The translations under genes and the position numbers were made by a program. Shown here piece by piece: positions 5,418 to 59,479 of a DNA stretch of 64,000 nucleotides. Position 1 is the first letter of the stretch; every line of letters starts with the position of its first letter. Location of the stretch: sequence record PP496441.1. One strand, given 5' to 3'. Below the pieces are notes generated by a model. The model had not been told where the DNA came from, did no database searches, and was given only the letters and a program-made list of their open reading frames with translations.

Positions 5418-8204
5418 TTAGGTAAAGTCTTTCTGTGCCAGCACCAGTGGAACGCCGACAGTATCCAGTGCTATCTGTGTGAACTCCTTCAATTCTGATC
5501 TGGTAAGCTTCCGGCTCAGCATCACCCCATCGTGCTCTTGTGCTACCACGATGTCTTTGTGTCGCATGTTGAACTCTATCATCACCGCTTGCTCCATACC
5601 GCAGGTGATGAAGTGCAGCAGCTTCGACTTCTCCTTTTGTGTCGTCCACCCATTCAGCAGCTTGTCCGTGTAGAAGAATGCAACGGACCCCAGAGCATTG
5701 CGTACGCTCACTGCGCTGGCGGTAGCATTGTCTGGATCAAGCCCCGCATCCTTGATTGATCTGGACAGCGACTTGTACAGGAAGTAGTTCTGCTTGGCGA
5801 TCAGGTCTCGATTGACCGGCAGCTTGACGTGTTCAGTTACCTTGTAGTCCGGGTGTGCAAGGATCATGCTGGGCAATGCCTGCATCGTCCTGATCACGGG
5901 GAAGATCAACCGGTTGGTGGTGTAGATCAAAGCGATTGCCAGCTCCATCATCTTAATCTTGAGGGCTTGCACGTGGCTCTCGTTCAACTCCAGTTCAATC
6001 GGTGCAACCAAACCACGGATAAGTTTGTCTATGGTGTCGGGCACCACGGAAGATTTCAGGATGGACTCATGCGATGTCTTGAGGCTGGACCCGTACATGA
6101 CGGACAGGAACATCAGCTTGCAGACTCCGTCGATAACCCGGATGAACTCCTTCTCCTTGCGCCACGTTTGACCCATCGTCCCCCCTGCGCTTTTCCATAC
6201 CTGATGCAGCACCAGTCGGTCATTCCATCTTGACTCACTTCCAGACCACTTCGGTGCGCCGTATACCCCAGCTCTCCATGGGTTCCGTACCATGACCAGC
6301 GCCGACTCCAGCAGCCCTTTGAATCCGGAGTCTTCCATCTCAGTCAGCACATGATCCGTCCACGTCTTGGATTCGTACATGCCGAAGATGGTCAACGCAC
6401 TATCCACGTCCCGGTCCGTGAGAAACACCTTCCCGTATTCGTCTATCGTCTCGACCAGTTCCTTGCGATACTTCTTGACCAGCCCACCGATCAACATCGG
6501 GTGGCAAGATTTGACATCGTAGTTGACGTATCCACTCTTGGTGAGGATCACCTGCTTGAGTTGGTTGGGCAGCGAACCAAAGCCCACCGGGGAGTTTATC
6601 CGGGGCGAGCGCAAGGTGGTGAAGTGATGTGCACGGTGCATTACGATCTGGTTGTGGCGGTCGCTGCTTCCTTGCTGACACCCCAAGTTCTCCGGGTTGA
6701 TCATGCGGGCCAGCGTACGGAAGGCTCCGGAGGATATGGCATCACCTGACGTGTGGTGCATCCAGCTCAGTTCCGCCAGCAGATCGTTTACGGGTAGGCG
6801 CACGCTCTTGGTGGACAGCATGCGGATATAGGCCTTCACGTTGACCGGAACAACTGGCCGGGTCGAAAGGTTTATATTGTCGCTGATCTCCTTGTACGTC
6901 GGGTTGTTCACCACGCAAGACTGAACCATTGAGACACGGCGCATCATCGTGCACGCCTTGACCGGCACCTTCTTGTCATGGAACATGTACAGCTTGCCCG
7001 GCTGGCCGGTCAGGTTATCATTCGCCACCAAAGACTCACCGTAGGGCAGCTGAGAGCTGAATACCATTACTGCCTGCCCCCGTTCGGCGAACGCGTAGAT
7101 CGCATTAGGCAGTACCCGGTTGCTACCCTTCAGATTGGTTAGCCAGCGGCCCAGCGGTTTAACGTCACGAGGCCGGCCCATCAAACGCCCATGCAGGTAG
7201 GCATCAACCTTATCCATGTACGAGTCAACGAACTGGGTGACCACAGGACCAGGTTCGAACGTGAACGTCTTGTGCTTCCAGTAATCTGCTTCCGTGGTTA
7301 CGGCCATCAGCCCCATGGTCTCCAGCACAGCGCGCACGGTATCCCAGTGATACGTCATCTGACCTTTCTTCGATCCTTCGATGTTCCGCCAGTTGATCAG
7401 ATTGTTGAACCGTTTTTCACCTTGATGCGAGCCGAGCCCGTAGCCTTCCTTGACCTGATCCTTCTTTATCGCGAACTGGGTATCGTGGCTATGATCCAGA
7501 TCAACGTGAAGGAACCGGGAAACAGACCGAGCGTGGTTCAGTTCCATGGGGAACGCCAGCTTGTTGGTCAGGTCCTTGGGGTTGAACGCAGGGTTCCATT
7601 GAAAGCCGTCCTTCGAGGTTCCCTTGTGTACGGCGGACACTAGATGCCGGGCCATTGAGTCGCGGGAGTCGAAGTGGCCTTTGTCGTTCACCTTATCCAG
7701 CAGCATGGGATATGCCACGACAAGGCGGGCGATCAGGAAGGCGAAGCAGTAGGCAGCAGACGGACCGGGCGCACAGTTGCGCTCCGCCATCTTCTGGAGG
7801 AAGGTTTCGTATTGATCAAGGATGAAGTAGCCCAGACCGGGGGTGACCGCTACCGGCAGGCCGACGACGCGGCTGTCCAGCCAGCTTTTGCCGCTAGGGT
7901 ACAGGTTATGCTTGGGGTTCAGCGAAGGTTCAACCACCATCATCCGCACATAGGGGACGTAGGACTGCACCCATTCAACGTTGGATTGATCTTTAGCTTC
8001 GGGGAAGTCACGGGTTACCTTTCCCACTTTGGCAATGAGATCAGTATTGAAGCGCCCTACATCCTTTACCTCAGGGGCCAGTGCGGGGTTTAGTCGAGCC
8101 GTAGCCTTGATGATGGGTATTTGGTCATACACGGGATACAAGTCTAGGGGCTTGGACAGTATGCCTGCATATTCCTTTTCCGAGAGTGGGGTATAGTCAG
8201 CCAT
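5418..8204 (-). CDS. divergent family-A-polymerase-superfamily protein
   Basis: 928 aa; PRINSPVGFGSLP (GRLSS-like), motif A NYDVKSCHPMLI, motif B KLMFLSVMYG, motif C QEHDGVM; no 3'-5' exonuclease motifs seen. Confidence 0.6.
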   Translation of the reverse strand: MADYTPLSEKEYAGILSKPLDLYPVYDQIPIIKATARLNPALAPEVKDVGRFNTDLIAKVGKVTRDFPEAKDQSNVEWVQSYVPYVRMMVVEPSLNPKHNLYPSGKSWLDSRVVGLPVAVTPGLGYFILDQYETFLQKMAERNCAPGPSAAYCFAFLIARLVVAYPMLLDKVNDKGHFDSRDSMARHLVSAVHKGTSKDGFQWNPAFNPKDLTNKLAFPMELNHARSVSRFLHVDLDHSHDTQFAIKKDQVKEGYGLGSHQGEKRFNNLINWRNIEGSKKGQMTYHWDTVRAVLETMGLMAVTTEADYWKHKTFTFEPGPVVTQFVDSYMDKVDAYLHGRLMGRPRDVKPLGRWLTNLKGSNRVLPNAIYAFAERGQAVMVFSSQLPYGESLVANDNLTGQPGKLYMFHDKKVPVKACTMMRRVSMVQSCVVNNPTYKEISDNINLSTRPVVPVNVKAYIRMLSTKSVRLPVNDLLAELSWMHHTSGDAISSGAFRTLARMINPENLGCQQGSSDRHNQIVMHRAHHFTTLRSPRINSPVGFGSLPNQLKQVILTKSGYVNYDVKSCHPMLIGGLVKKYRKELVETIDEYGKVFLTDRDVDSALTIFGMYESKTWTDHVLTEMEDSGFKGLLESALVMVRNPWRAGVYGAPKWSGSESRWNDRLVLHQVWKSAGGTMGQTWRKEKEFIRVIDGVCKLMFLSVMYGSSLKTSHESILKSSVVPDTIDKLIRGLVAPIELELNESHVQALKIKMMELAIALIYTTNRLIFPVIRTMQALPSMILAHPDYKVTEHVKLPVNRDLIAKQNYFLYKSLSRSIKDAGLDPDNATASAVSVRNALGSVAFFYTDKLLNGWTTQKEKSKLLHFITCGMEQAVMIEFNMRHKDIVVAQEHDGVMLSRKLTRSELKEFTQIALDTVGVPLVLAQKDFT

Positions 8205-8978
8205 TGGATAGCTCGCGTATTACCGGAGTGAATGGAATTGGACGTTATCAGCCCATTTACCAGACTATATACAGAGTATCTTATGGGGGTTAAAAAGGAC
8301 CATCTTGCAATTATTTGGGTCATTAATTACCTTCCAGAACATAAACCTCTATCTGTGGATACGGGGGTAGTTAGCCCTAGATACATCCCTATTACCTGTG
8401 TATATTGCCCATGTAGACTCTATTCCCCTATCGGGAAGTATAACCTCGAAAAAGGTTCCTAGCTTGCATGGGCTGGCCCACCCACCCCCGTGACCCACCC
8501 GACCGCCCGGTTAAGGCCATACCTAGGGATTCCTTTCTCCCAGAGGGACCCCCAGCCGCCCATCCTTCCCCTGCTCCTCCCTTTCCTTCATCATCTACAC
8601 CCACCCAGCTATTGACTTACCATCTAGTGATCCTCCTTCCTCCAGCTTCTACATAGGCAGTTAGCTTCCCCATGCCTCTAAGCTCCTCCGCTTCATCATG
8701 CACTTATGCTCTGTAGTACTGATTCCCCACATGCCCGTGACTTATGCTCTGGTGTCAGTATTCCCAGCCTCCCAGGTGAAAAGGGTGTCCATGCGCTGGG
8801 GAGTTGTCCGGGGAATAGCGCCCGTGAATAGGGCTTCCAGGCGTGCGATATGGGGAGTTTTCCGGGGATGGATGAGTCAGTATGGCGGGGAATGGGGAAT
8901 GAAGCGCCTGCGAGCTTGTAGGAGCCCGTGGTTATTGGCTGGATACACGGGGCGGGGCGTGGGTTTCCTGCGGAGGTG
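8205..8978. other. long non-coding region, candidate replication origin or control region
   Basis: no ORF with phage-like codon usage; AT-rich block, then C/pyrimidine-rich block, then G-rich block; imperfect direct repeats at 8702 and 8741. Confidence 0.45.
8702..8768 (+). repeat. two imperfect 28-bp direct repeats (39-nt period)
   Basis: ACTTATGCTCTG-N8-ATTCCC at 8702 and 8741. Confidence 0.7.
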
Positions 8979-9012
8979 AAAAAGCCCGCACGGCTTGGGA
9001 CCGATACGGGCT
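8979..9012 (-). terminator. intrinsic terminator
   Basis: AGCCCG...CGGGCT-TTTTT on the minus strand. Confidence 0.75.
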
Positions 9013-9170
9013 CTGGTATTACTTGACTTACTCGGGATGCCTCACTTGTGGGTGACACACGAAGTCGATGGACTGCACTGGTAAGATGAGTGGCACCGTG
9101 CCCTTGTACTTGCGGATCAGCTGGACGTATATCTCACCGTCCCACTTGCCCAGCTCGTTCACCTGACTAA

Positions 9171-9614
9171 CTATCTCGTCGAGGGAGAGCCGAGTTGCCG
9201 CTGGCTCAGGATGATCTCGTACAGCTCGCCGCCCGGTTTCAACGTGTCGGGGTTCTCAGTGTGCAGCACCGCGATCAGATCCATGATGTCCGTGTTGTGT
9301 CCCAGTTCCGCCGACGGGATCATCTGGAATTCCTGACTCACGCCGGGGATCGGATCTTGCGGTCGGTACAGCGCGACCACCCTGCCTTTGCCCGGCTCGG
9401 CGCCCAGCTTGCTACCGTCTCGTCCCACCCACATCTCACGGGAGCCCGGCACACTAGCTGGCACGTATTCGATAGAACCTTCAGGGTAATGCGCGGAGAA
9501 CGTGGCAACGAACCACCGCGAACTGCCCTTGTAGCAGCGGAACGGTTTGGTCTCTCTGGCGTGACGGGTCAGTGGGTTGTTCATAGGCGTAGAGTGTTCG
9601 ACGATCAGTGACAT
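9171..9614 (-). CDS. hypothetical protein, possibly frameshifted into 9028-9170
   Basis: 147 aa with AAGAGGAA SD; the -1 frame continues coding-like to TAA at 9028. Confidence 0.65.
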   Translation of the reverse strand: MSLIVEHSTPMNNPLTRHARETKPFRCYKGSSRWFVATFSAHYPEGSIEYVPASVPGSREMWVGRDGSKLGAEPGKGRVVALYRPQDPIPGVSQEFQMIPSAELGHNTDIMDLIAVLHTENPDTLKPGGELYEIILSQRQLGSPSTR

Positions 9615-14767: not shown

Positions 14768-14796
14768 AGTATGGACTCATTTACCCAGTCTGTCAA
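14768..14796 (-). promoter_or_regulatory. sigma70-type promoter with GTAAATG in its spacer
   Basis: TTGACA-gactgggtaaatgagtc(17)-CATACT on the minus strand. Confidence 0.75.
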
Positions 14797-18813: not shown

Positions 18814-18847
18814 CATTTACACGAGGCCTATGCGCGTGGGGTAAATG
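18814..18847. promoter_or_regulatory. back-to-back GTAAATG elements at the strand switch
   Basis: CATTTAC 18814-18820 (minus-strand GTAAATG) and GTAAATG 18841-18847 facing divergent genes. Confidence 0.55.
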
Positions 18848-18909: not shown

Positions 18910-20388
18910 ATGAAATCTGTAGCCGTTGACTACCAAAAGATAGCCAAGGAATGCCAGTGCACCGAGCTGCCTTCCAAGGTAAGAGTTACTCGTGCACGGG
19001 TCTATCCAAACTTGAGGACGTGCCTACTCTTCCTCAAGTACGATGCCAAAGGTGAACTGGTACAAGCCGAGATCACTGCGCCGTACGACACGTCCACCGA
19101 GCCAAAGGTGAGGGTGCTCAAGCACCCGGACAAGAAGTCCGACTTCCTTTCATTATACAGGGCGCTGATCCGCCACCAGATCATACCCGAGTCTATTCCG
19201 AAGAAAGGTAACGGGATTGCACCAACGCTGGAGGTCATCGGCACACTGGTGAGCCTGCTGCCGGAACGGGATGTCGAAACCTTCCGTACGCTGACCCCGG
19301 CCATCCAGACTGGCAGCGTCATGTACGTCCCGCTGGTCACGTCCCGGCCAATGCCCATGGTGCAACACTGGATACCTGTTGACCAGCATTCAGAGCTGGG
19401 CATGATCGAGCTAGTCGATACGGATAGCAAGCCTTTCCTTAATCAGTGGGTCAACAGGTTGAGCAACACCGCCACTGGTTATGTGATCTACACCCCCGAA
19501 GGCTCACACGGTCAGGAACTAGCCTGCTTCCGGGTGCCCAATGTGCAAGGGGAGGAACTGTGTGTGGTCAAGAAGGTTGACTTCACCCTGACTGTTGCTC
19601 GCACGCTCAAGCCGGTACTGACTGTATCCACCAAGAGTACTCGGGCAGTGTCCCGCATTCCCCTACCCCACTATCTGATGCTACGCAATCACCACATCAA
19701 GGTGGGCACGGTTATTTCCCTGCGTCGTAACGACCGAGGTGGGTTGGTGTACCATGAGACGGTGGCCGAGGAAGGCATGACACCCCTCCCACTGTGCCCG
19801 CACTGCCACAGTGGGTCTGTGCTGCGAGGTAGTAGCAATGACGTGTACTGCAATAACGATTCATGCCGAGGCCTAGCCATTGTGCGACTTCGCTACATCT
19901 TGAACAACAAGCTGGACGTCAAGTACCTGAGCGACAATAAGGTAACGGCGCTGATCAATGACAAGCAGGACCTGTTCAGCTTGCTTAAGACCCCGACGCA
20001 CCAGTTACGGCACAGACCTGGCTTTGGTGCACGTACCGTGGACGCACTGGAGGAGAAGCTTAACACTATTGCCGGTCTTCCACTGCACACACTGGCCGAG
20101 ATGTCCTGCGCTTTCTACAACGTGGGCGTGCCCCCACTGGATGAGATGGTGTTCAAGAAGATCTTTTCCGTTATGTCGCTTGACTACCTGAAAGCGCTGC
20201 CGTCTACCGGCAAGATGTACAGTCAGCTGCTCGACATCGAAGGTATCCGCAACAACCGCGCAGTGGCTTTCCTTGCTGGCTGGCCTGCATTTCAACAGTG
20301 GATGATAGACCTGAACGCTGCCCTACAGTCTCGCATCGCAATCTCCTCCACGGTAAATAACCCGAAACAAATTCGAGGTGTGAAATGA
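18910..20388 (+). CDS. degenerate NAD-dependent DNA ligase-like protein (OB + Zn finger + HhH)
   Basis: TVARTLKPV...HIKVGTVISL (LigA OB-like), CPHC..YCNNDSC Zn finger, PGFGARTVDAL HhH; no KxDG adenylation motif seen. Confidence 0.6.
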   Translation: MKSVAVDYQKIAKECQCTELPSKVRVTRARVYPNLRTCLLFLKYDAKGELVQAEITAPYDTSTEPKVRVLKHPDKKSDFLSLYRALIRHQIIPESIPKKGNGIAPTLEVIGTLVSLLPERDVETFRTLTPAIQTGSVMYVPLVTSRPMPMVQHWIPVDQHSELGMIELVDTDSKPFLNQWVNRLSNTATGYVIYTPEGSHGQELACFRVPNVQGEELCVVKKVDFTLTVARTLKPVLTVSTKSTRAVSRIPLPHYLMLRNHHIKVGTVISLRRNDRGGLVYHETVAEEGMTPLPLCPHCHSGSVLRGSSNDVYCNNDSCRGLAIVRLRYILNNKLDVKYLSDNKVTALINDKQDLFSLLKTPTHQLRHRPGFGARTVDALEEKLNTIAGLPLHTLAEMSCAFYNVGVPPLDEMVFKKIFSVMSLDYLKALPSTGKMYSQLLDIEGIRNNRAVAFLAGWPAFQQWMIDLNAALQSRIAISSTVNNPKQIRGVK

Positions 20389-21149
20389 ACAATCAAAACA
20401 GAACTCGTATCGCTGTGCTTGTCGGCGGCGGTCTGGACTCACATGCGTACATGGTATTGAAAGCCGACCAGCCTCAGACAGACTTCATTCATGTGGACTA
20501 CGGCCAGCGGGTTGCAGTAGCCGAGAGAAACGCCGTGTTGCAAATGGCTGAGAAGCTGGGCATTGCCCGCAGCCGGGTGTACACGCTGATCTGCAACAAG
20601 AAGAATCACATGCGCAAGGTCAATGACGGTGTGGGTGTGTTGTTTGGCACCGGCCCGGTCGAGATGGACAATGCGTTTGTTAAGGGACGTAACCTGTTCC
20701 TGATTCAGAAGGCCATCGAGCTGGGCTACGGTCACGTGCACTTGACGCTGACCCAAGAGCGTGGCCGGATGTTCCCCGATGCCGATCTGGCATTCGTCCA
20801 GCTGGTTGACAACCTGATGCACCGCAGTTATGACGTGAGGGTATCCGCCCCCTACATCATGGAAGACAAGCATCGGGTGATGTTCAAGGCGTATCGGCAT
20901 TGCCCCGAGTTCCTCGATATGTCTTTCACGTGCTGGGTAGGTCCTTATGTGGAATGTGGCACGTGCCCGCACTGCGTCAAGAAGGAAAAGATTCGAGCCG
21001 AGATGATCGTTGAGAAGATTGAATACGATCTCAGCAAGGATGAACGTGAGGCGCAGTGGGAGCAAGTCAAGGCAGGCTACGGCGACGCGTTGAAGCCCGC
21101 TGAGACCATCAACATGAACATTCAGGTTGTTGACGGAGGACTGAAATGA
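20385..21149 (+). CDS. queC: 7-cyano-7-deazaguanine synthase-like PP-loop ATPase (QueC paralog 1)
   Basis: VGGGLDS, DYGQR..AERNA, FVKGRN, FPDAD, TCW..CGTCPHC Zn site. Confidence 0.85.
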   Translation: MNNQNRTRIAVLVGGGLDSHAYMVLKADQPQTDFIHVDYGQRVAVAERNAVLQMAEKLGIARSRVYTLICNKKNHMRKVNDGVGVLFGTGPVEMDNAFVKGRNLFLIQKAIELGYGHVHLTLTQERGRMFPDADLAFVQLVDNLMHRSYDVRVSAPYIMEDKHRVMFKAYRHCPEFLDMSFTCWVGPYVECGTCPHCVKKEKIRAEMIVEKIEYDLSKDEREAQWEQVKAGYGDALKPAETINMNIQVVDGGLK

Positions 21150-21856
21150 ACAAGTTCTTAGGTTGGTTCAAGCGTCTGCTGGATAAGAAGCACAAGTCGA
21201 TCACGATGACGTTGACCGACGCCGAAGGTAAGTTGGTCACCATCCACATACCGCAAGGTGCGGGTGTCGAATACACGCTCTCGAAGTCGGGCACCCACTT
21301 GAACGTCTCAGTTAAAGACGACGTCTTCATGTTGCGCACGAATGGCGCTGGAGGCGGTGGCAGTGGAAGTTCCAAGCCCGGTCTCAACGGTGGCCCCGGC
21401 CATACACCTATCCCCCGGTCCCCAAGCTTCACGGGCGCTGGTACGCCGAACTACGGTCACGCAGGCGACCCGCCTGTTGGTGCTCAAGCTTCGTTCCCTA
21501 TCGGCGCCCGAGCAACTGTTTCTGGTGGTGGGCGCGTTGGTGGCCTGTCAGGTGGAAGCGCAAACGGCACAATGGCTGGTGGTGGAGATGGCTTCGTTCC
21601 CTCTCCAATCCGTAGCTCTGATCGAGCTTACCTGATTAGAGGTTTGTATTACGTCATCACGACGAAGAAGATAACGGGAGAGCAATACCCGATCCATGAG
21701 CTTCTGCATTGGGGTAAGAAGTCAATCGAACTCATGGGCAAGTTCTCCACCGTCCGAGACGCTATCGACGAACTCAAATTGAAGACGGGTATCCCATTCG
21801 AAGACCTGACGGACTATCAGGTTGATTCCCTTCCCAAACGACTGTGCAAGCCTTGA
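21146..21856 (+). CDS. hypothetical protein with Gly/Pro/Ser-rich central linker
   Basis: 236 aa between the two queC-like genes. Confidence 0.7.
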   Translation: MNKFLGWFKRLLDKKHKSITMTLTDAEGKLVTIHIPQGAGVEYTLSKSGTHLNVSVKDDVFMLRTNGAGGGGSGSSKPGLNGGPGHTPIPRSPSFTGAGTPNYGHAGDPPVGAQASFPIGARATVSGGGRVGGLSGGSANGTMAGGGDGFVPSPIRSSDRAYLIRGLYYVITTKKITGEQYPIHELLHWGKKSIELMGKFSTVRDAIDELKLKTGIPFEDLTDYQVDSLPKRLCKP

Positions 21857-21894
21857 TCGGGTAAATGGCCCGTAACTAATCCGGAGACACCAGC

Positions 21895-22713
21895 ATGACC
21901 ACTGCGCCCCCAAAGATTATCGTTGCATTCAGCGCCGGTACAGATTCAACTACAGCGGCCTACTACTATCGCAAGCTCGGCTATCAGGTAACGCTGGCCG
22001 TGTTCGATGACGGCGCATGCAACGATCCACTTGACCCTCTGTACGATCCGAACAAGCCGAAGGACTTGACCAACTTCTCGGATGAGTTCTACGATTACGT
22101 ACGGATTCACCAAGAGCACACGGAAGGCCATCTTCAGTTCGACTTCGTGGAGATTCGTTATCCGCAACTCGCATTGCTGGAAGCCAACAAGACAGCCAAG
22201 CCCGGTCGGGACAATGCAGCAGCAGCAGAGGCTGACGGCTTGGGCTTCTGGGTCGGCTTCAAGGGCCTGATGGCAATGTTGCTGATGAGCCACGGCGCCG
22301 CCAATGGTTACGAGGCAGTAGTCTTCGGCCACATGCCGTACAACAACCATTACGAAGATGAGCTGCCCCAGAACTTCGAGCTGCTGCGTCAGTACATGGT
22401 TACGGCCTATGGCAGCCGAGTGGAAATTCCTCAGATCTACCACCCGTTCTATCGACCTAATTTCGATACCAAGGAAAAGGTTATTGAGCTGGCGCAGGCA
22501 ATCGGCGTGCCCTTGCGAGATACCTATTCGTGTCGCCGAGGTGAAGTAGAAACCCGAGGTATCCTCCTGCCACTTCTGCGTGGCGGTAACTCCAACTACG
22601 TGAGCCCCACCTACCGTTGGAAGCATTGTGGTACGTGTGAGAACTGTGTCGAACGCAAGCGAGCCTTCGCGGCGCTGGGCATGAAAGATCCTGCCCCTTA
22701 TATGGAACATTGA
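21895..22713 (+). CDS. queC: QueC-like PP-loop ATPase (paralog 2, divergent)
   Basis: FSAGTDS, TKEKVIELAQAIGVPLRDTYSC, CGTCENCVERKRAF. Confidence 0.75.
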   Translation: MTTAPPKIIVAFSAGTDSTTAAYYYRKLGYQVTLAVFDDGACNDPLDPLYDPNKPKDLTNFSDEFYDYVRIHQEHTEGHLQFDFVEIRYPQLALLEANKTAKPGRDNAAAAEADGLGFWVGFKGLMAMLLMSHGAANGYEAVVFGHMPYNNHYEDELPQNFELLRQYMVTAYGSRVEIPQIYHPFYRPNFDTKEKVIELAQAIGVPLRDTYSCRRGEVETRGILLPLLRGGNSNYVSPTYRWKHCGTCENCVERKRAFAALGMKDPAPYMEH

Positions 22714-22714
22714 T

Positions 22715-23731
22715 ATGGCCCTTTCAATCTGGCCGCTGACCGAAGGTGAACTCGGTCAGGGCCTCGTCAACGAACTGAATCGTACCAGCAAGGCGCTGGT
22801 GAACCGGAGTATGTGGTCTTTGCCATTGCTCCGGCGGTTGTTTTATCGGCGCACCGAGATTGGTGTCCCGGAGCTACTCCACGTCTGTACCAGCATTCAT
22901 CGGGGCAAGACTTACTTCTGCCTGTTGGTGAACTTCCGAGACGTGGTGATGGGCAACCCCGAGCAATACGGATGGGACCTAGCTGGCCGGTGGTTGTTCT
23001 ACGATGTGGATCTGCTGGATACCCCGGAATTTAAACAGGTAAACGCGGCTATTCGTAAGGTGGCTACGGTCAACACGGTTACCTACGGTCAAGCATTCGT
23101 TCCGGATGAAGGTGGTATGGGGGAGGAGCACTGGATCAAGAAACTGAAAGGTAACTACCGCCCCCACATCTTCGGCGAAAAGTCAAAACAGGTTATCGTC
23201 AGTCAGACCTGCGGACACGCGGCTACTCACGTGCTGACCGAGGCAGTGATGTCATTCGGTATCCAGCGCGCTGAGAGATTTCTCGCGGAAGGTCAGTCGG
23301 ATGTCATGCCGGAGTTGTATGACCTACCCATGCAGCTAGCCGGTCTAGGCTCGATCCCCGGAACCCGGATTGGCACCGTGTCGCTCACCTGCCGGGATAC
23401 CCATGCGCTGATCGGTACCCTGTCGTTCTACGTTGTGGCGGGCTTGGGTCACAGTGATATCTTGTATATGCACGAGATGCTGATTGATCCGGATCCGAAG
23501 TGGAAGCATCTATCGGTGGCCGTCAACTTGCACATTCAGGCAATCATGTATGTGCGCTATCTAAACAACCGATCTGATCGGGCTTCGGACTTGGTTATCA
23601 ACCTCGGATTCAACTTGGACGAGAAGTACAACACATACAAAGAGGTGTTCCGTCCGAACAAGTCCGAAATGGAAATCTATACCGGCATGCACACCGAGCC
23701 AGGCGTCCCACTGTCCTGTTTCAAGGGGTAA
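22715..23731 (+). CDS. Fem/ATE1/Bpt-like GNAT-fold transferase 1
   Basis: C-terminal IDPDPKWKHLSVA...INLGFNLDEKYNTYKEVFRP resembles the YLGY..YK..FRP end of aa-tRNA transferases. Confidence 0.5.
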   Translation: MALSIWPLTEGELGQGLVNELNRTSKALVNRSMWSLPLLRRLFYRRTEIGVPELLHVCTSIHRGKTYFCLLVNFRDVVMGNPEQYGWDLAGRWLFYDVDLLDTPEFKQVNAAIRKVATVNTVTYGQAFVPDEGGMGEEHWIKKLKGNYRPHIFGEKSKQVIVSQTCGHAATHVLTEAVMSFGIQRAERFLAEGQSDVMPELYDLPMQLAGLGSIPGTRIGTVSLTCRDTHALIGTLSFYVVAGLGHSDILYMHEMLIDPDPKWKHLSVAVNLHIQAIMYVRYLNNRSDRASDLVINLGFNLDEKYNTYKEVFRPNKSEMEIYTGMHTEPGVPLSCFKG

Positions 23732-23734
23732 GAC

Positions 23735-24736
23735 ATGTACACTCCGTATTCCCAAAACAGTCTGATGCAATCGATCCCGCTGGATGACCAAGGTACATTC
23801 GCCCATCCACCGTACACGATGGAAGGAGAGTTCACCGACGTGTGGACGAATCCAAACCTATATGGATTCGTCAGCCTGTTGAACGGCCAGAGCAATAGCC
23901 GGGCATATCGAGACTGGATGACCACCCACAATCTTCCAGCCCTGTTCCTCGGTCCGCACCATGAAGACAACTTCTGGTTTGAATTCAGCACTGGTCTCGA
24001 TTCCAACTGCACGCTGGATTACAACGAGATCAACGTCCAAGGCAACCTGCAGGACTTCCTTGGGAGATTGACGTCATCTCGCCGTCGCTCCGTGCTCAAG
24101 GCAAAGGAAACGGATACAATGATCCACAAGGCAGGCTCGGTAGCCAACTTCAACCTGTATCATCCGGTGGAGGGTAGGCTGTATAGTCTGACCGTGATTC
24201 ACGAACGCCGGGTGATGAAAGATATTTCCGAGTTTATCGAATCGAAACTCTGGAGTATGAAGCATACGCCTACTGACCTCACGTACGGTGCATTCACCAC
24301 TCTGATGGACTACATCCGGTTGAAGCAGCGAGATGACACGCCGCTGGGCCACCGGTTGCGCAACGTACAGCTCTTGGTCATTCGAGATGAACGCTCCGGG
24401 TTTATCGTGTCAGTTCATCTGGTGGCGATCAACACGTTGAAAGATGATTCCATGAACCCCACCAAGACGTACATGCACTCCTTCGCACGCATCACTGTTC
24501 TCCCTGCACGTATCGCCTTACTTGCGTTGATCAAGGCGGTTCAAGAGTTAAACGTCACCAGTCAGTACGCGTCCCGTGCACTGGCGAAGATCGACTATCT
24601 TGATGTGAGCAACGTGGTGCTGTCCGAGCGAGAGCAGTACAAGTCGGACTTCTTAACCGGCAAATGCCAAGTGCGTGCGTGGGCGTCCCCGGCGCTGCTG
24701 GAACGGCAGTTACCTTTCGTTACGCCGATCCCGTAA
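23735..24736 (+). CDS. Fem/Acetyltransf_6-like GNAT-fold transferase 2
   Basis: LQDFLGRLTSSRRRSVLKA helix and terminal YLD..EQYKSDF. Confidence 0.5.
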   Translation: MYTPYSQNSLMQSIPLDDQGTFAHPPYTMEGEFTDVWTNPNLYGFVSLLNGQSNSRAYRDWMTTHNLPALFLGPHHEDNFWFEFSTGLDSNCTLDYNEINVQGNLQDFLGRLTSSRRRSVLKAKETDTMIHKAGSVANFNLYHPVEGRLYSLTVIHERRVMKDISEFIESKLWSMKHTPTDLTYGAFTTLMDYIRLKQRDDTPLGHRLRNVQLLVIRDERSGFIVSVHLVAINTLKDDSMNPTKTYMHSFARITVLPARIALLALIKAVQELNVTSQYASRALAKIDYLDVSNVVLSEREQYKSDFLTGKCQVRAWASPALLERQLPFVTPIP

Positions 24737-51688: not shown

Positions 51689-51759
51689 TCTTCGTCATTC
51701 GCTTTCGCTCTGGTAAATAGCACGCATGAAAGTCCCCGTTTTTGAAGAGGGTAACCTGT

Positions 51760-54700
51760 GTGTTAATATCCAGAGCGTCATTAGAGAAGTTTGATTTCGG
51801 AAGTCTGTTTGATGATCACGTCAACAACGTCGGCAAACCGTACAAGGTACAGTCAGTAAGATCCACCGATTGGTTCCAGTCCAAGGAACGTCTGCTGGTG
51901 ATCATGGGTCGTCCCAACTACCGGGATGCCAAAGACGAAGTGCGCTGCATGATGGGCGCAGATGAAACCCGCATGGTGTTCGATAACCTGCTGGACTTGG
52001 CTGCGTCCAACGCTGAGGTTTATGCGAAGAAGGCAGGAATCAAGCTACGGTCCCGTAACAAGCACGCGATCATGGTCACCAACTTCCAGATTGCTGACCT
52101 GAGTTCAGCGTCGGAGGAAACAGAGTCCATCGCCAACCACGCGGCAGCTAACCGCGTCTCCATGCTTATCCACGTGACCCGGCCCACCAAGGTATTGATC
52201 GTCGGGCTGTACGCCGAGTCGTACCTGATGGAACGCTCAGGCATCGAGTACCCGGCCAAGAAGCGCGGCAACCCGCATCAGGTTGAGTTCAAGGTTGAGT
52301 TCAAGCCCAACGAGAAAGAACTCAAGCGCATGCAGTCACTGGAAAAGATGCGCTCTAAGGCTTTGGTACGGGAACTGGAGAGCAACGAGTACCACCCATG
52401 GGTAAACTTCTTCCTTGAGGAAGTGGCGCACGAAGGTGCCAAGCTGGCTGACTTCGCCAAGAAGGGTGGCACGTACTCGCTGAGCAACACGGTCCAGACG
52501 TTCTCCACTATCGACTATGACCGGGCGTTCACCAGTGGTTCCGGCGAGAGCGACCTCGATGATGACGCGGTGGTAGAAGCCAACCTGCTCGGGTACGTGA
52601 GCCGGAACATCGCTAACTGCCTGCTGGGCTGCAATCCATTCAGCCTGCGTCATCTGTTCAGTGAGAAGCAACCGTCCGGGCCAAAGGGTAAGCCCACGAT
52701 TCAGTGCCACTATGTCGATACGCTGAAGAAGTTCGACACTCTGTGGGATAAAGTGATGGAAGCGGACCTGGTGTCCCTCGACGTGGAGACGACGGGATTC
52801 TACCCGCACACGAACCGGTTACTGTCGCTTCAGGTGGCTACGCGGAAGGAGGAAGGTTTCTTCGTCCCGCTCTATCACAAGGATACCCCGTTCACCAAGA
52901 AGGAACTGGAGCACATCCGTCTGCGCGTCAAAGCGCTGCTGGAACTTAAGGTTACCTACCACAAGAACCAACGCCGCAAGCGCATGATGCTCGGCCAGAA
53001 CTTCGGCTTCGACAAGAAGTGGTTGATGCACTGGTGCGACGTACGCTATCTGTACTGGCCGGTGTGGGACACTATCGCCGGTGAGTTCTGCCTCGACGAC
53101 AACCTCAAGGGTCTGGTGGGTAAAGCCCTCGGCTACAAGTACACTCCGTTCTCGTTGGACTCCATCGTGGCGTCGTACGAGAACTACCACTATCTGGAAT
53201 CGGAGTTCGGCAAGGAAGATCGGACCACCATCGAGCATGCCAAGTTCGGTCCAGGTGAACCGGTTGTCACCTACGGCTGCATGGACGTTGTCTTCCCCAT
53301 CGCCGCCATGGAACAGCAACTGAACCGTGCAGAGTGTGAGCACTGGCCGACCGGTAACTACCGAGACACTCTGTTCAACTTCATGTTGGCTCAGATGTCG
53401 AACATGATCAAGGTGCAGTCGGGTATGTCGCACCGAGGCATCATGATGGACCAAGGTTACATGGAGTTCCAGCTGAGCGAAGAGGGTGTGTTCGCCAAGG
53501 ACGTGGAACGCCTGACCCGCGAGTTGTACGCATCCAAGAATGTGAAGAAAGCGTCCGAGATGCTACGGGGCAAGAAGGGTATCCCTCAAGGTTCCCTGTT
53601 CGGTAATGCGGGTGGTGACGCTGCGGGCTTCAACCACGCCAAGCAGGAACACTTGGAGATCCTCTTCTTCGACGTGCTCAAGCTGGCACCGGTCAACGTC
53701 AAGAAGGAGACAGATAAGCGCTCGCTGGACGATGACTTCAAGAAGGCGTACAAAGCCGTACCAGAGGTTGCGTGCTGGGCGCAGATGGGTAAGATGCAGC
53801 GGTTGCTCGATACGTTCATTCGCGCCATCTACAACCACATGAACAACGACCCAGACTATTCGGTGCACAACAGGCTCCATCCCGGCTACGGGTTCAAGGA
53901 GGTTGTGACCGGTCGATCCAACAGTAGCAAGCCGTCGCTCCAGCAGATCCCGGTGCACAGTGCCGAGGCCAAGTACGTCAAGCGGCAGTTCGTGGCCCCG
54001 ATGTGGACCTTGTTCGATGACGCTGACTATAGCTCTCACGAGGTTCGCTGCGCGGGTATCACGGCGTTCGACGAAGCTTCATGCTCGGGCTTCCGCAAGA
54101 TTCACAACATCGTACTGGATCACAGGCTGTATCCATCGAAGGATAACAAGATCGTCCTGCTCACGGCGGGCGACAGCCACAAGCAGAACTACTCCCGCTT
54201 CACCGGTCTGGATATCAAGGAATGGATCACCTTCGACTTGACCGAGGAAGGCAAGAAGAAGGCAAAGGCACTGCGACAAATCGCCAAGACCATCGTGTTC
54301 GGTGCGATCTATGGTAAGTCGGCACCCTCGCTGGCCGCAGAGCTGGGTATCAGCGTCGAGGAAGCAGAAGAGCTGCTGTTCAACTTCTTCAAGGAGTTCG
54401 CGGACCTCAAGGACTGGCTGGAGTGGACCAAAGACTATTCCAACAAGCACTTGTACACCTTCGGCCCCCACGGTCGCAAGCGCCGTCTGTTCGGCTACAT
54501 CACCGGCATCAAGCGTACCCAGTCTGCGATGGAACGTCGTGCGCAGAACTCGCCAATTCAAGGCTTCGCATCGGACGTTATGTTCGACGCCGCCGAGATG
54601 TATGCGCAAAAGCAGCATGAGGTGTACGCACTGATCGAAGCCAACCGTAGCCTGCGCAAGATGCTGAGCAAGGAGCTGGAGATTGTCAATCAGTTCCCTA

Positions 54701-55161
54701 CTGGCGCCAACGTTCTGGTTCACGACTCCAGCAAGTCAGAGTCGCCGTTCAACTTCCTGCTGATGAACATGCACATCAAAGAGTGGTGTATGACCACGGG
54801 CGTCCAGAACTATCTTGAGTCCAACTTTGACATGCAGTTCTTGACCCCGTTCGGTATCGACTTCGACATCGGCGCATCGTGGGCAGACATGGAAGGCTGG
54901 GACTTCAACCCGACCACCCTGATCGGACCTCAGCCCAAGGACAAAGATGGTAAGCCGGGTATGGGCATCATTGAGACGGCACTGGAGAACAGCCAGAAGA
55001 TTCACAACTACTCGTTCAACACCGACAAGGTAGCGCAAGGTATGTTCACCCGCTACCACATGCTGAGAGACGAGCTGAAGCTGGATGAACTCTTCCCGTT
55101 GAACATGAAGTACTGCGTGGACAAGGACTGGCAGGTGCCTACTCCGAAACTTCCAAAGTGA
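51760..55161 (+). CDS. polA: family A DNA polymerase with N-terminal UDG-like domain and 3'-5' exonuclease
   Basis: LDVETTG, NFGFD, YGCMD (exo I-III); TGRSNSSKPSLQQIP; ADYSSHEVR; AKTIVFGAIYG; VHDS; likely GTG start after GAGG. Confidence 0.95.
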   Translation: MLISRASLEKFDFGSLFDDHVNNVGKPYKVQSVRSTDWFQSKERLLVIMGRPNYRDAKDEVRCMMGADETRMVFDNLLDLAASNAEVYAKKAGIKLRSRNKHAIMVTNFQIADLSSASEETESIANHAAANRVSMLIHVTRPTKVLIVGLYAESYLMERSGIEYPAKKRGNPHQVEFKVEFKPNEKELKRMQSLEKMRSKALVRELESNEYHPWVNFFLEEVAHEGAKLADFAKKGGTYSLSNTVQTFSTIDYDRAFTSGSGESDLDDDAVVEANLLGYVSRNIANCLLGCNPFSLRHLFSEKQPSGPKGKPTIQCHYVDTLKKFDTLWDKVMEADLVSLDVETTGFYPHTNRLLSLQVATRKEEGFFVPLYHKDTPFTKKELEHIRLRVKALLELKVTYHKNQRRKRMMLGQNFGFDKKWLMHWCDVRYLYWPVWDTIAGEFCLDDNLKGLVGKALGYKYTPFSLDSIVASYENYHYLESEFGKEDRTTIEHAKFGPGEPVVTYGCMDVVFPIAAMEQQLNRAECEHWPTGNYRDTLFNFMLAQMSNMIKVQSGMSHRGIMMDQGYMEFQLSEEGVFAKDVERLTRELYASKNVKKASEMLRGKKGIPQGSLFGNAGGDAAGFNHAKQEHLEILFFDVLKLAPVNVKKETDKRSLDDDFKKAYKAVPEVACWAQMGKMQRLLDTFIRAIYNHMNNDPDYSVHNRLHPGYGFKEVVTGRSNSSKPSLQQIPVHSAEAKYVKRQFVAPMWTLFDDADYSSHEVRCAGITAFDEASCSGFRKIHNIVLDHRLYPSKDNKIVLLTAGDSHKQNYSRFTGLDIKEWITFDLTEEGKKKAKALRQIAKTIVFGAIYGKSAPSLAAELGISVEEAEELLFNFFKEFADLKDWLEWTKDYSNKHLYTFGPHGRKRRLFGYITGIKRTQSAMERRAQNSPIQGFASDVMFDAAEMYAQKQHEVYALIEANRSLRKMLSKELEIVNQFPTGANVLVHDSSKSESPFNFLLMNMHIKEWCMTTGVQNYLESNFDMQFLTPFGIDFDIGASWADMEGWDFNPTTLIGPQPKDKDGKPGMGIIETALENSQKIHNYSFNTDKVAQGMFTRYHMLRDELKLDELFPLNMKYCVDKDWQVPTPKLPK

Positions 55162-55789: not shown

Positions 55790-56761
55790 ATGAAAGATAT
55801 GCGCTATACCGAACTGTTCTATTCCCTCCAAGGTGAGGGGTTGCGCGTTGGAGTGCCGTCGGTATTCTTCCGCATGTTCGGTTGCAACTTCGAGTGCAAG
55901 GGATTCTCCAATCCTGAGATGAAAGATCCCAACGTGATCCCGGCCATCAACCTGCTGTCGATCAACGAAGCGGATCTGGAGCTGGGCTGTGACTCTCGTT
56001 ACAGCTGGCACAAGGACTATCGCAACCTGGCGATTAAAGCGGCACCCCATGAGGTGGCCAACCGGCTGATCGACTTCACCAAAGAGAAGTTCATGGCAGC
56101 TGCGGCTCGCTGGCCTAAACGTAATCTGGAGGGCAAGGTAGTTAAGCTGATCCCCGGACAAGCCCCGGAAGTAGGCGTCCAGACGCTTACGCTGGCTAAT
56201 GTACCAGACTGGGTGTTCACCGGCGGAGAACCGTTCATGCAGCAAGAGCAGCTGGAAGGCCTGCTGCGTCACGCCATGTACGTTGTGGAAGAGGAGGACG
56301 TTAACTTTGGCCTGCTTGGCCTGCCGATGCTGACTTTCGAGACCAACGCCAGTATTTCGATGAGAGACTCCATGCTGGATTGTCTCAAAGATTACAACGA
56401 TGGCTTCGGCGACGTGCACTTCTCTAACAGCCCCAAGCTGTCATTCACGGGAGAGCATCGCAACGCGGCTCTGAAGCCCTACGTTATCGAGCAACAATGC
56501 TCCATCGGGGGCTCCAGTTCGTTCAAGTTCGTGGTGCGCCCTGCTCGCGAAGACTTCGATGAGCTGATGGAGTTCATGCAAGAGTATCAACCCTACATGG
56601 ATGAAGGTAGTATCGAGAACATATACGTCATGCCGGTCGGTGCCAGCCTACATCAACAGCAGGCCATCGCCACACAGGTTGCCGAGCTGGCACTGGAATA
56701 CGGCCTGTCCTACAGCCCCCGACTCCAGTGTGACCTGTGGGCCAACAAGATAGGGACGTGA
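55790..56761 (+). CDS. queE: 7-carboxy-7-deazaguanine synthase (radical SAM)
   Basis: ELFYSLQGEG, FRMFGCNFEC...GCDSRYSW, FTGGEP, FETN, SPKL, KFVV, YVMP, SPRLQCDLW. Confidence 0.92.
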   Translation: MKDMRYTELFYSLQGEGLRVGVPSVFFRMFGCNFECKGFSNPEMKDPNVIPAINLLSINEADLELGCDSRYSWHKDYRNLAIKAAPHEVANRLIDFTKEKFMAAAARWPKRNLEGKVVKLIPGQAPEVGVQTLTLANVPDWVFTGGEPFMQQEQLEGLLRHAMYVVEEEDVNFGLLGLPMLTFETNASISMRDSMLDCLKDYNDGFGDVHFSNSPKLSFTGEHRNAALKPYVIEQQCSIGGSSSFKFVVRPAREDFDELMEFMQEYQPYMDEGSIENIYVMPVGASLHQQQAIATQVAELALEYGLSYSPRLQCDLWANKIGT

Positions 56762-56763
56762 TC

Positions 56764-57108
56764 ATGGATTCCTTTCAAGAGTGGTTCATTTACGACGTGA
56801 TGTTTTGGGTGACGACAGGTGCCATGTTACTCGGTGCCTTGATGAGCTTACTGGTGACACTGGTACTGGTCAAGATGGACCAGCGCATGGTAAATAAAGG
56901 TTACTGGAGTGCACCCCAAAATCGGGGTGATCCGGCCTTCCTGTGGTTCCACATAACCATGACCGTGATCTTCTTTCTCCTTGTCATCACGGACCTCATA
57001 AACGCCAGACTTTTCACTATCATCGGAACCCTTGGGTACTGCGCTATCTCTATATACGCGCTGATCCTCAGGTTCCCCACAACTACCAACAAGGACACCC
57101 CGCAATGA
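56764..57108 (+). CDS. multi-TM membrane protein
   Basis: three hydrophobic segments. Confidence 0.65.
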   Translation: MDSFQEWFIYDVMFWVTTGAMLLGALMSLLVTLVLVKMDQRMVNKGYWSAPQNRGDPAFLWFHITMTVIFFLLVITDLINARLFTIIGTLGYCAISIYALILRFPTTTNKDTPQ

Positions 57109-58331
57109 CGATCAAAGACCGTAACCGCCGAGAGAAACGTAGCAAGCGCGACAGCCGACTGGTCAAGTCTGTCAAGTCCCGTACCTCCAGCTGGAAGTTG
57201 CACATCAACCCCGGAACACTGGTCAAGAGCATGCAGAACGCCCTGACCATGACCAAGAGCGAGCACGTGCTGCTGACTGTCGAGACGTCGCCGGAGGGTA
57301 ACGCCCAGATAGTAATCGTCGCCACGGGTAACGACGTGCAGTTCAAGCAGGTAGTGGTCGGCACCATCGATCAACTGGGTCCAGAGCCGGGGCTGGGGTT
57401 GGACGTTAACGTCTTGACCGGCATTGCACGTGGCCGGAAAGAGATGTGCCTGTTCACCGAACCAGACGATACCCGCATTCACTTCTCGTCGAAGGGCGCC
57501 AATGGCCGGGCCTACTCCGGAGATGTGTGTTCGGTCCCTGATATCGCCTTCGCCGTGGACAGCATCGCCCCGAGTAAAGACGATGTGATCCTCGATCAGA
57601 GCATCCGTACCGCGCTACAGACGGCCGTCAACCGTGTGGGACTGACCGACGTGGTGGAAGGCAAGGAACTCGACCTGTGGGTACAAGCCAACATGAAGGG
57701 CTTGACCGTGGCGTGCTTCGACACTCTGCACGTAGCAACCCTGCATTTCTCCGAACTCAAGGTTAAGCGTGACTTCAACCTTAACTTGCCGCTGTCCACG
57801 TTCACTACCATTCAAGGCCTTACCGAGAGCGGTGAGTTCACCATCGGCATTGCAGACAACACCATCACGGCGTATAGCGACGAGTTCTTCGTGAGCATGC
57901 CACTGCTGCAAGAGACGGCGCGTACCCAATCGCTGGCCGACGTGTTGAGCCTGCTGCAAACCATCACCAGCAACGGCAGTCCGGAAGCCAGCTTCACGTG
58001 TTCGGTGGAAGATCTGAACACCGCGCTAGGCTCGACCAACGCGGTCTTTGAAACGGGTGCCAAGACCCGACTGACCGTCGAGAAGAAAACCGGGGTAACG
58101 ATCAACATCAAGACCAGCTACGGTCAAGTAAATGACCAAGTGGCGAACGACAACTTCACAGGCAGCGGCGAGTTCGTAATCTCGCAACCGTTGCTGGAAG
58201 ATATCCTGCGGGTGTACAGCGACGACAAGATCACCCTCAAGCTGTATAACGATAAGCCGGCCTCGCTGCTGTCGGCCACGGGTAAGGTAAAGGACTATAC
58301 CTATACCTACATCGCACTGTTGATGGATTGA
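57105..58331 (+). CDS. DNA polymerase sliding clamp (beta-clamp-like)
   Basis: ~408 aa, three-domain pattern; VACFDTLHVA resembles DnaN vatDghRla; sits in the replication module. Confidence 0.65.
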   Translation: MTIKDRNRREKRSKRDSRLVKSVKSRTSSWKLHINPGTLVKSMQNALTMTKSEHVLLTVETSPEGNAQIVIVATGNDVQFKQVVVGTIDQLGPEPGLGLDVNVLTGIARGRKEMCLFTEPDDTRIHFSSKGANGRAYSGDVCSVPDIAFAVDSIAPSKDDVILDQSIRTALQTAVNRVGLTDVVEGKELDLWVQANMKGLTVACFDTLHVATLHFSELKVKRDFNLNLPLSTFTTIQGLTESGEFTIGIADNTITAYSDEFFVSMPLLQETARTQSLADVLSLLQTITSNGSPEASFTCSVEDLNTALGSTNAVFETGAKTRLTVEKKTGVTINIKTSYGQVNDQVANDNFTGSGEFVISQPLLEDILRVYSDDKITLKLYNDKPASLLSATGKVKDYTYTYIALLMD

Positions 58332-58720: not shown

Positions 58721-58729
58721 GGGCCTACC

Positions 58730-59470: not shown

Positions 59471-59479
59471 GGTGACATC

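Follow-up and report, generated by a model that had tools for sequence, protein, structure and literature searches.

The last 64 kb of sequence record PP496441.1 (202,632 bp) form the stretch analysed here, called the window (64,000 nucleotides (nt); window position equals record position minus 138,632). The record is that of Pseudomonas phage vB_PpuM-Pori-4, a myovirus of P. putida from Estonia with a genome of ~200 kb. Next to its head and tail gene module the window holds Pori4_00166, whose product is labelled 'hypothetical protein' in the record. The question raised by this locus is whether a phage that encodes a canonical family-A DNA polymerase carries a second enzyme of the same superfamily and, if so, what that enzyme makes. 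The C-terminal ~500 residues of Pori4_00166 are predicted from structural modelling to be a polymerase domain of the family-A superfamily (PolA / T7-RNAP / TV-Pol), and a role in DNA synthesis is tentatively preferred for it.

A functional gene with family-A polymerase motifs

Pori4_00166 (100% identical to PP496441.1 144053-146836) is a real, functional protein-coding gene under strong purifying selection. The ratio of nonsynonymous to synonymous differences (pN/pS) is 0.062 and 0.035 against the orthologues of the sister phages SKa-4 and Aura (pS ~0.24), and the amino-acid replacements are distributed along the entire protein. Since the ratios are low and the replacements cover the whole length, this conclusion includes the N-terminal half, and the purifying selection rules out a pseudogene or dead relic. 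An earlier note on this DNA had proposed a 928-residue open reading frame with three polymerase motifs; the frame is found at the expected coordinates, on the minus strand, and the motifs lie at the expected residues. The features of the gene are the following.

5418..8204, minus strand: whole open reading frame, 928 codons plus stop, ATG start (open reading frame list, translation)
5421..6923, minus strand: family-A polymerase-like domain (thumb, palm, fingers), residues ~428-928
6924..8204, minus strand: N-terminal region, residues 1-427, under purifying selection; predicted local distance difference test (pLDDT) below 50 in both AlphaFold2 runs
6600..6602, minus strand: codon of R535, in 'SPRIN', invariant in 20 homologues
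6498..6521, minus strand: motif A YDVKSCHP (residues 562-569), in which D563 is predicted to be catalytic; N561 and D563 invariant
6090..6119, minus strand: motif B (O-helix) KLMFLSVMYG, residues 696-705, with K696, Y704 and G705; K696 invariant
5592..5615, minus strand: block HFITCGME, residues 864-871, counterpart of PolA N-x-P-x-Q-G; G869 and E871 invariant
5526..5537, minus strand: motif C EHDG (residues 890-893), in which D892 is predicted to be catalytic; E890, D892 and G893 invariant

Besides these residues, K550 and G558 are invariant in the alignment of 20 homologues, and K925 and F927 are nearly so. Both aspartates to which the earlier note had assigned catalysis, D563 and D892, are thus kept across very distant relatives, and the conservation of this predicted catalytic pair is far beyond what chance motif matches give. 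R535 aligns with the arginine of the PolA T/DxxGR motif (Klenow R668). The family consensus around it reads GGRLFE-x-GGGFQNLP-xx-LKQ, in Pori4_00166 SPRIN-SPVGFGSLP-NQ-LKQ, and corresponds to the PolA block TGRLSS-xx-PNLQNIP that bears the primer-template arginine. The same block is set by hhalign against RGGRMY-GIQNLP of divPolA2, a divergent phage PolA discussed in the last section. The fifth position after the motif A aspartate, which is the steric-gate position of PolA, is Glu in DNA-type PolA and Gly in T7-like RNA polymerases (RNAPs). It is His568 in Pori4_00166 and the other Pseudomonas proteins and Gln in most relatives.

Motif B reads RSTAKTLNYGGIYSG in the most conservative family members, near the AKIFNYGRIYGAG of Pol gamma and the AKTFIYGFLYGAG of T7 DNA polymerase. 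These are exactly the segments chosen by the PDB profile search and by hhalign: the only PDB profile matches are Pol gamma (E ~0.8), and hhalign places the family motif opposite the T7 DNA polymerase segment (E 0.047). The block that precedes motif C, H-x-x-x-(Q)-G-x-E in the family, is set by hhalign opposite NSPIQGFASDV of the phage's own canonical PolA, and conservative family members have 'QG' there. Motif C is aligned to the Vibrio and Erwinia proteins by both BLASTP and hhalign, and its invariant E890 stands two residues ahead of D892. In T7-like RNAPs the second carboxylate of motif C is missing (HDS), as it is in Pori4_00166. Note that the HDG and the YGS that ends motif B resemble T7-like RNAPs, while the bulky gate, the QG block and the NYG..Y.G O-helix of the relatives resemble DNA polymerases. 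The distance from D563 to D892 is 329 residues, as compared to 172 in the Erwinia proteins and ~175-180 between the catalytic aspartates of Pol I enzymes, the mark of a large insertion in the fingers. The Pfam search of Pori4_00166 gives no exonuclease domain, as the earlier note had said.

Predicted structure

An AlphaFold2 model of Pori4_00166 built from the single sequence is useless (pLDDT 34.6). With the 20-sequence alignment the mean pLDDT is 51, with 60-94 over residues 540-928 and below 50 over residues 1-533. Compared by Foldseek to the PDB, the top 20 matches of this model are only family-A DNA polymerases and T7 RNAP (probability up to 0.97), the PolA DNA polymerases coming first. 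The model displays the Klenow-type right-hand fold of thumb, palm and fingers, the palm domain on which the earlier note had staked its proposal. It is not structurally closer to single-subunit RNAPs than to DNA polymerases: the former have lower structural scores (yeast mitochondrial RNAP 6.8, T7 RNAP 6.6, N4 RNAPII 6.0, human mitochondrial RNAP 5.4). Among viral models the best match is the family member of Dickeya phage JA29 (E 7e-5), followed by PolA enzymes, T7-like RNAPs and virophage 'helicase/primase/polymerase' proteins, which are TV-Pol fusions (Foldseek probability 0.99-1.00, E 1e-3 to 3e-2). The search of AFDB Swiss-Prot gave nothing meaningful.

The ESM Atlas, which is independent of the assembled alignment, leads to the same superfamily. 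Pori4_00166 and an Erwinia homologue share their nearest clusters there, unnamed phage proteins of ~500-700 residues, and the model of the best cluster of the Erwinia homologue has structural neighbours that are almost all DNA_pol_A. Shape matches in the Atlas also include D5_N/DUF5906 fusion proteins. The N-terminal region (residues 1-427) has no match in Pfam, PHROG or NCBIfam, and an Atlas feature search with residues 1-430 gave only chance-level scores, the RPOL_N/RNA_pol clusters at 0.51-0.54 being no evidence. The earlier note had rightly described an unrecognised N-terminus, estimated at ~500 residues; the structure shortens it, with the polymerase domain starting near residue 428.

These matches bear on two rivals of the DNA polymerase interpretation. 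One is a primase-polymerase or origin-specific initiator of the TV-Pol/CcPol kind, which would initiate chains of DNA, or short ones of RNA, de novo on the phage's single-stranded DNA at a cognate site within the neighbouring non-coding stretch, the N-terminal domain recognizing that site or single-stranded DNA and the gene and site travelling as a swappable initiation module. It is a serious rival, though rather unlikely, and it gains from the virophage TV-Pol proteins and the D5_N/DUF5906 fusions among the matches. In common with TV-Pols, Pori4_00166 lacks a nuclease domain, and its unrecognised N-terminal domain is probably helical. CcPol is a precedent of an A-family polymerase able to act as primase (10.1101/2022.12.02.518924). 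The other rival, which we regard as unlikely, is a single-subunit DNA-dependent RNAP of T7-like chemistry that would transcribe a subset of phage genes or an origin primer. It finds support in the T7, mitochondrial and N4 RNAPs among the structural matches, in the 928 residues with a large N-terminal domain that resemble the layout of T7 RNAP, in the HDG of motif C that lacks Glu, and in the motif B ending YGS, as in T7 RNAP. Hhalign to T7 RNAP, however, gives no sensible alignment, the steric-gate position is bulky, and homologues of ~525 residues leave little room for promoter recognition.

Distribution and relatives of Pori4_00166

Sequence searches with Pori4_00166 reach only its closest relatives. 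No match was found in Pfam (a sub-threshold chance match only), PHROGs or NCBIfam, nor by phmmer against PDB sequences, and neither PF00940 nor RPOL_N is matched. A word-indexed search of 5.8 billion proteins returned only the protein's own cluster, and its alignment query only two Vibrio proteins. Phmmer over 1.84 billion cluster representatives yielded the own cluster and a 1010-residue protein that is 38% identical (Peetri-type allele), and nothing else. A tblastn search of 50,697 phage genomes locates the gene solely in the 'G3' group of P. putida jumbo phages, nine in number: eight have versions that are 97-100% identical and one, Peetri, a version that is 33% identical. The paper describing these phages makes no mention of Pori4_00166.

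More distant relatives were reached through the phages. The nearest other phage by major capsid protein is Vibrio phage vB_VcorM_GR11A (53% identity), followed by phiRSL1, Lu11, PaBG and then the Erwinia/Dickeya/Yersinia jumbo phages. GR11A has a 617-residue hypothetical open reading frame at a comparable place, between helicase/RNase H genes and capsid genes, and pairwise BLASTP aligns it to Pori4_00166 at the motif C region (E 0.005) and, with lower score, at motif A. The GR11A protein in turn matches hypothetical proteins of 525-560 residues from Alexandravirus, Sasquatchvirus, Salmondvirus and a Yersinia phage (E down to 2e-8). Among the collected homologues, 16 of 20 belong to phrog_30690, which has no assigned function. 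The hhalign comparison of the Pseudomonas sub-family with the Erwinia/Vibrio family gives E 5.4e-4 and a probability of 30%. The two are linked because of this score, the five motif blocks in the same order, the synteny and the structural result.

The family is present in ~60 of 94 related jumbo-phage records, 51 of them from Erwinia, Dickeya, Yersinia and Vibrio phages and 9 from Pseudomonas phages. A scan of IMG/VR with Pori4_00166 alone gave nothing, a metagenome scan with the Erwinia subset of the family gave 4 loci only, and a scan of genome contigs found none. One metagenomic member, of 506 residues and GC-rich (L019:2194-3714, plus strand), occurs on IMG/VR contig 3300009008_000008 and two others. 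Its motif B is degenerate (WKTIFCALLTGAR) and its motifs A and C are intact. By its sequence, this predicted member shows that the family reaches beyond cultured phages.

Other replication genes of the phage

The canonical polymerase of the phage, placed at 51760 by the earlier note, is indeed encoded in the window, at somewhat different coordinates.

51904-55161, plus strand: canonical polymerase, 1085 residues, Pfam DNA_pol_A (2.6e-38) plus 3'-5' exonuclease

It is 96% identical between Pori-4 and Peetri. Within the clade, 94 phage records contain a canonical polymerase with exonuclease and PolA domains (a count of records; 25 rows were inspected, all with canonical PolA). Since the phage has this enzyme as well, Pori4_00166 is an accessory second polymerase and not the replicase. 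No alignment is obtained between the first 200-270 residues of the canonical PolA and the polymerases of clade members at a greater distance; this part was reported to be a uracil-DNA glycosylase domain in PaBG-like phages (PMC7412058).

Outside the window the genome encodes a Toprim/DnaG-type primase, Pori4_00112 (Pfam Toprim_2, E 5e-7), and a sigma-70-type factor, Pori4_00102. It also holds genes for a DnaB-like helicase, a clamp loader, topoisomerases and 7-deazaguanine synthesis. The earlier note had argued for priming by Pori4_00166 from the lack of a DnaG in the window, an argument that falls with Pori4_00112; the Toprim primase and DnaB-like helicase weigh against a primase-polymerase. 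The sigma factor likewise weighs against an RNAP, while the fact that no phage RNAP is annotated in the genome speaks for one. QueC-like, QueE-like and GTP cyclohydrolase genes are annotated at window positions ~20385-24000 and 55800-60060 (record 159017-162363 and 194422-198693), and their annotation suggests 7-deazaguanine modification of the phage DNA. Outside the window, a 1916-residue open reading frame at PP496441.1 113185-118935, annotated 'DNA helicase', is unusually large for a helicase.

The GTAAATR motif and the upstream non-coding DNA

Pori4_00166 is preceded by a promoter-like motif that it has in common with replication genes.

8254..8260, minus strand: GTAAATG promoter-like motif, 50 nt 5' of the Pori4_00166 ATG
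14778-14784, minus strand: further GTAAATR site
18841-18847, plus strand: further GTAAATR site
51713-51719, plus strand: further GTAAATR site

The GTAAATR motif put forward in the earlier note proves genuine. The window holds 21 sites where 6.4 would be expected; all lie on the coding strand, typically 25-60 nt before the start codons of replication and nucleotide-metabolism genes, that of the canonical PolA included. Many sites extend to a consensus of roughly GTAAATR-N2-4-CSGTAAC. No copy occurs in the capsid and tail genes that occupy the window start. In the Peetri allele GTAAATA lies 27 nt before the ATG. GTAAATR probably marks a class of promoters specific to the phage. Pori4_00102, the phage sigma factor, may take part in reading it and is the simpler candidate for its recognition. 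Because the gene itself, in both alleles, lies behind the motif, Pori4_00166 is argued against as the reader of GTAAATR. The phage RNAP that the earlier note had offered is, as a general enzyme acting at these sites, disfavoured on this ground and by the presence of the sigma-70-type factor: an RNAP gene would sit behind the same motif as its would-be targets, in alleles that are only 35% identical. A polymerase packaged in the virion was also considered, the gene bordering the head and tail module, and was set aside, since the motif is of the replication-gene type and absent from the structural genes of the window.

The gene starts at a 966-nt non-coding stretch (8205-9170) in an otherwise densely coding genome; the earlier note had correctly seen it, with a different extent. 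Its half adjacent to the gene, 8205-8642, is specific to the allele; the conserved half is 8643-9025.

8643..9170: remainder of the non-coding stretch, of which 8643-9025 is conserved with Peetri (92% nt identity)

Read on the minus strand, 8205-9170 presents a C-rich half followed by a G-rich half (GC skew +0.20 to -0.33). A structured RNA or other structured element was rejected, as no Rfam family matches 8205-9170 and its predicted folding is no better than that of shuffled sequence (z-scores +2.0 and +0.7). The repeat search over 8100-9300 detected only short, weak families and no convincing iterons. At the end of the upstream operon (Pori4_00167), at ~8980-9011 on the minus strand, a hairpin CCCGUAUCGG...CCGUGCGGG followed by CUUUUUC looks like an intrinsic terminator; it was unreported by the consensus scan.

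In each of three lineages the gene has unusually long non-coding DNA before it (Pori-4 966 nt, Peetri ~650 nt, Vibrio GR11A ~1.1 kb), which supports a primase-polymerase acting at such a site. This interpretation is weakened by the lack of iterons or significant structure in the non-coding region and by the Erwinia members, whose upstream non-coding DNA is only 137-415 nt long.

An exchanged gene and upstream segment

Comparison of Pori-4 with Peetri by blastn and blastp delimits a block that comprises most of the gene and part of the non-coding DNA.

5617..8642: divergent cassette, codons 1 to ~862 plus 438 nt upstream

Over 5617..8642 there is no nucleotide similarity to Peetri, while the flanks are ~91-93% identical. 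Similarity ends 438 nt upstream of the ATG (8642) and resumes ~66 codons before the stop (5617). The Pori4_00166 protein is 32-35% identical to that of Peetri, as compared to 89-98% for the neighbours (00167 90%, 00165 96%, the ATPase 89%, the major capsid protein 98%). The strong conservation between Pori-4 and Peetri near motif C partly reflects the recombination boundary; motif C is still conserved in the distant relatives. The sequence pattern looks like allele replacement rather than runaway divergence, because selection within the Pori-4-type allele is strongly purifying. A milder version is found in the Erwinia phages, where the gene is 45% identical as compared to 64-84% for most neighbours and where strong divergence extends to a few small downstream genes. 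The small genes that directly follow the polymerase-like gene (L008:6765-8499, L009:7402-8575) overlap its stop codon. Between related phages they are ~32-35% identical or missing altogether, and they may be functional partners of the polymerase-like gene. Among phages including several members of the genus Alexandravirus, the gene is 21-45% identical.

That the divergent block takes in not only the gene but also 438 nt of non-coding DNA upstream, between flanks ~91-93% identical, is support for a primase-polymerase with a cognate site. The priming option of the earlier note, having lost its argument from DnaG, recovers some ground here. Against it, the upstream edge of the block may be a mere recombination point, the RxxxK motif is absent from Pori4_00166, and no D5-like helicase, resolvase, integrase or OB-fold partner gene adjoins the gene. 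A bolder version, which seems decidedly unlikely, is that the gene and its 438-nt upstream segment form a self-contained exchangeable initiation module, with a PolA-derived primase-polymerase or origin transcriptase and its own cognate site, the latter being recognized by the fast-evolving N-terminal domain and the fingers. If this were true, related jumbo phages would carry incompatible alleles of one replication-start system, equivalent, within family A, to the cassettes of initiator and origin in lambdoid phages and plasmids.

The variation is also what a locus engaged in conflict would show. An enzyme that yields some nucleic-acid product for defence against co-infecting phages or for counter-defence, or a polymerase-derived protein whose main role has ceased to be polymerisation, would account for a gene that is hypervariable between near-identical Pseudomonas phages, less sharply so in Erwinia phages, and 21-45% identical in comparisons that include Alexandravirus, such variation being typical of arms-race loci. 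This alternative appears very improbable: Pori4_00166 matches no PADLOC model, its catalytic residues are invariant and its allele is under strong purifying selection, and its promoter-like motif is the one common to replication genes.

Activity proposed for Pori4_00166

The interpretation tentatively preferred, with somewhat less than even confidence, is that Pori4_00166 belongs to the family-A superfamily as a DNA polymerase without proofreading, which acts beside the replicase, uses deoxyribonucleoside triphosphates (dNTPs) and is template-directed; it may be a primase-polymerase like TV-Pol or divPolA2. DNA synthesis is favoured because of the fold scores and the DNA-polymerase-like motifs of the relatives. 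The bulky steric-gate residue (Gln/His), unlike the Gly of T7-like RNAPs, and the GTAAATG motif common with replication genes also count for it. With its catalytic residues intact, the protein is predicted to be catalytically competent. By analogy to PolA enzymes, D563 of motif A and D892 of motif C would bind two catalytic metals, K696, Y704 and G705 of the O-helix would bind the incoming nucleotide, and R535 would contact the primer-template. The enzyme would synthesize DNA on phage DNA while replication is under way, whether to fill gaps, for repair, in recombination-dependent synthesis or on special templates, and the 1085-residue polymerase with exonuclease would remain the replicase. We infer the DNA rather than RNA nature of the product, the primer dependence and the biological role.

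Several observations weigh against this assignment. PF00476 is matched neither by Pori4_00166 nor by any of 18 family members, even at E<=1, and no sequence profile assigns Pori4_00166 to any family. The sequence link of the Pseudomonas proteins to the Erwinia/Vibrio family is modest, and the AlphaFold2 model depends on an alignment assembled from these weakly related sequences. Motif C is HDG and not HDE, with Gly in place of the second carboxylate (Glu) of DNA-type PolA. The '...YGS' of motif B resembles T7 RNAP as much as DNA polymerases, and the Arg four residues before the motif B Lys (RxxxK), present in some relatives (RSTAKTLNYGGIYSG), is absent in Pori4_00166 and Peetri. A hypervariable, module-swapped site is unexpected for an ordinary repair polymerase. 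On sequence alone, the sugar specificity could be for dNTPs or for ribonucleoside triphosphates.

Comparison with known systems

Pori4_00166 is a very divergent new variant within the known family-A superfamily, because it fails the PF00476 and PF00940 sequence tests and does not have the helicase/recombinase linkage of TV-Pols. With the family-A DNA polymerases of PF00476 (Klenow, Bst Pol I, KlenTaq, apicoplast Pol, Pol nu, Pol theta) only the polymerase domain is comparable. The arginine of T/DxxGR, the motif A Asp, the Lys and Tyr-Gly of motif B, the N-x-P-x-Q-G block and the His-Asp of motif C come in the same order. The differences are an identity of only 7-13%, EHDG instead of HDE, His (Gln in relatives) instead of the steric-gate Glu, an O-helix without Arg at Lys-4, the lack of any 3'-5' or 5'-3' exonuclease domain, and the presence of ~430 unrecognised N-terminal residues and of the fingers insertion. 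T7-like single-subunit RNAPs (PF00940, PF14700, including N4 RNAPII) have in common with Pori4_00166 the superfamily fold, a length similar to that of T7 RNAP, the small residue after the motif C His-Asp and the Lys...Tyr-Gly-Ser spacing of motif B. They differ in that there is no PF00940/RPOL_N match and no meaningful hhalign alignment, and in the gate, which is bulky in Pori4_00166 and not Gly.

The TV-Pol family, which includes CcPol of SCCmec, was described by Iyer, Abhiman and Aravind in 2008 (PMC2579912). Its likeness to Pori4_00166 lies in the minimal family-A core without nuclease domains, the conserved Arg hairpin, the two catalytic Asp, the optional uncharacterised helical N-terminal domain and the occurrence in viruses already holding a replicase, and some of the best structural matches among viral models are virophage TV-Pol-helicase proteins. 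Pori4_00166 differs by the lack of RxxxK. In the Pori-4, Peetri, GR11A and Erwinia neighbourhoods the gene is not linked to any D5-like helicase, resolvase, integrase or transposase, and none of the genes adjoining Pori4_00166 has a nuclease annotation. PolA-SSB primases (CcPol-MP) have an OB-fold 'MP'/SSB (single-stranded DNA-binding) partner gene, which was not found adjoining Pori4_00166 by Pfam and PHROG searches of the neighbours; the latter have no match in either database, and the gene downstream is on the opposite strand.

Among the systems described so far, the nearest analogue is divPolA2, a divergent PolA of barbaviruses and other phages reported in 'DNA polymerase swapping in Caudoviricetes bacteriophages' (PMC11348598). 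It too is an extra PolA-like gene without exonuclease in phages with a regular DNA polymerase, has a globular N-terminal domain for which no similarity can be detected and lies in a variable neighbourhood. Its authors left open whether it is a DNA polymerase for repair or an RNA polymerase (PMC11348598, section 13), and their weighing of the latter for this analogous family is a point in favour of an RNAP here. divPolA2 is ~430 residues long and was reported to have no homologous thumb, whereas Pori4_00166 has 928 residues and its model aligns through the thumb region. The hhalign comparisons of family alignments to divPolA2 AUR84708 pair the correct motifs and are not significant (E 0.026 for GGRLF..QNLP..motif A, probability 1.9%; E 0.26 for motif B). 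Pori4_00166 was not filed as a divPolA2 member.

The present assignment, at the level of fold and predicted catalysis, concerns a family publicly labelled 'hypothetical', namely phrog_30690 and a Pseudomonas branch that had no family at all. The combination of EHDG with a Gln or His steric gate offers a test of what sets DNA versus RNA synthesis and primer dependence in the superfamily. The allele swap is a natural experiment on specificity, in which phages ~90-98% identical carry alleles ~35% identical and the upstream DNA changes along with them. Beside divPolA1 and divPolA2, Pori4_00166 would be a third case of large phages keeping a second, extremely diverged PolA without exonuclease alongside their replicase.

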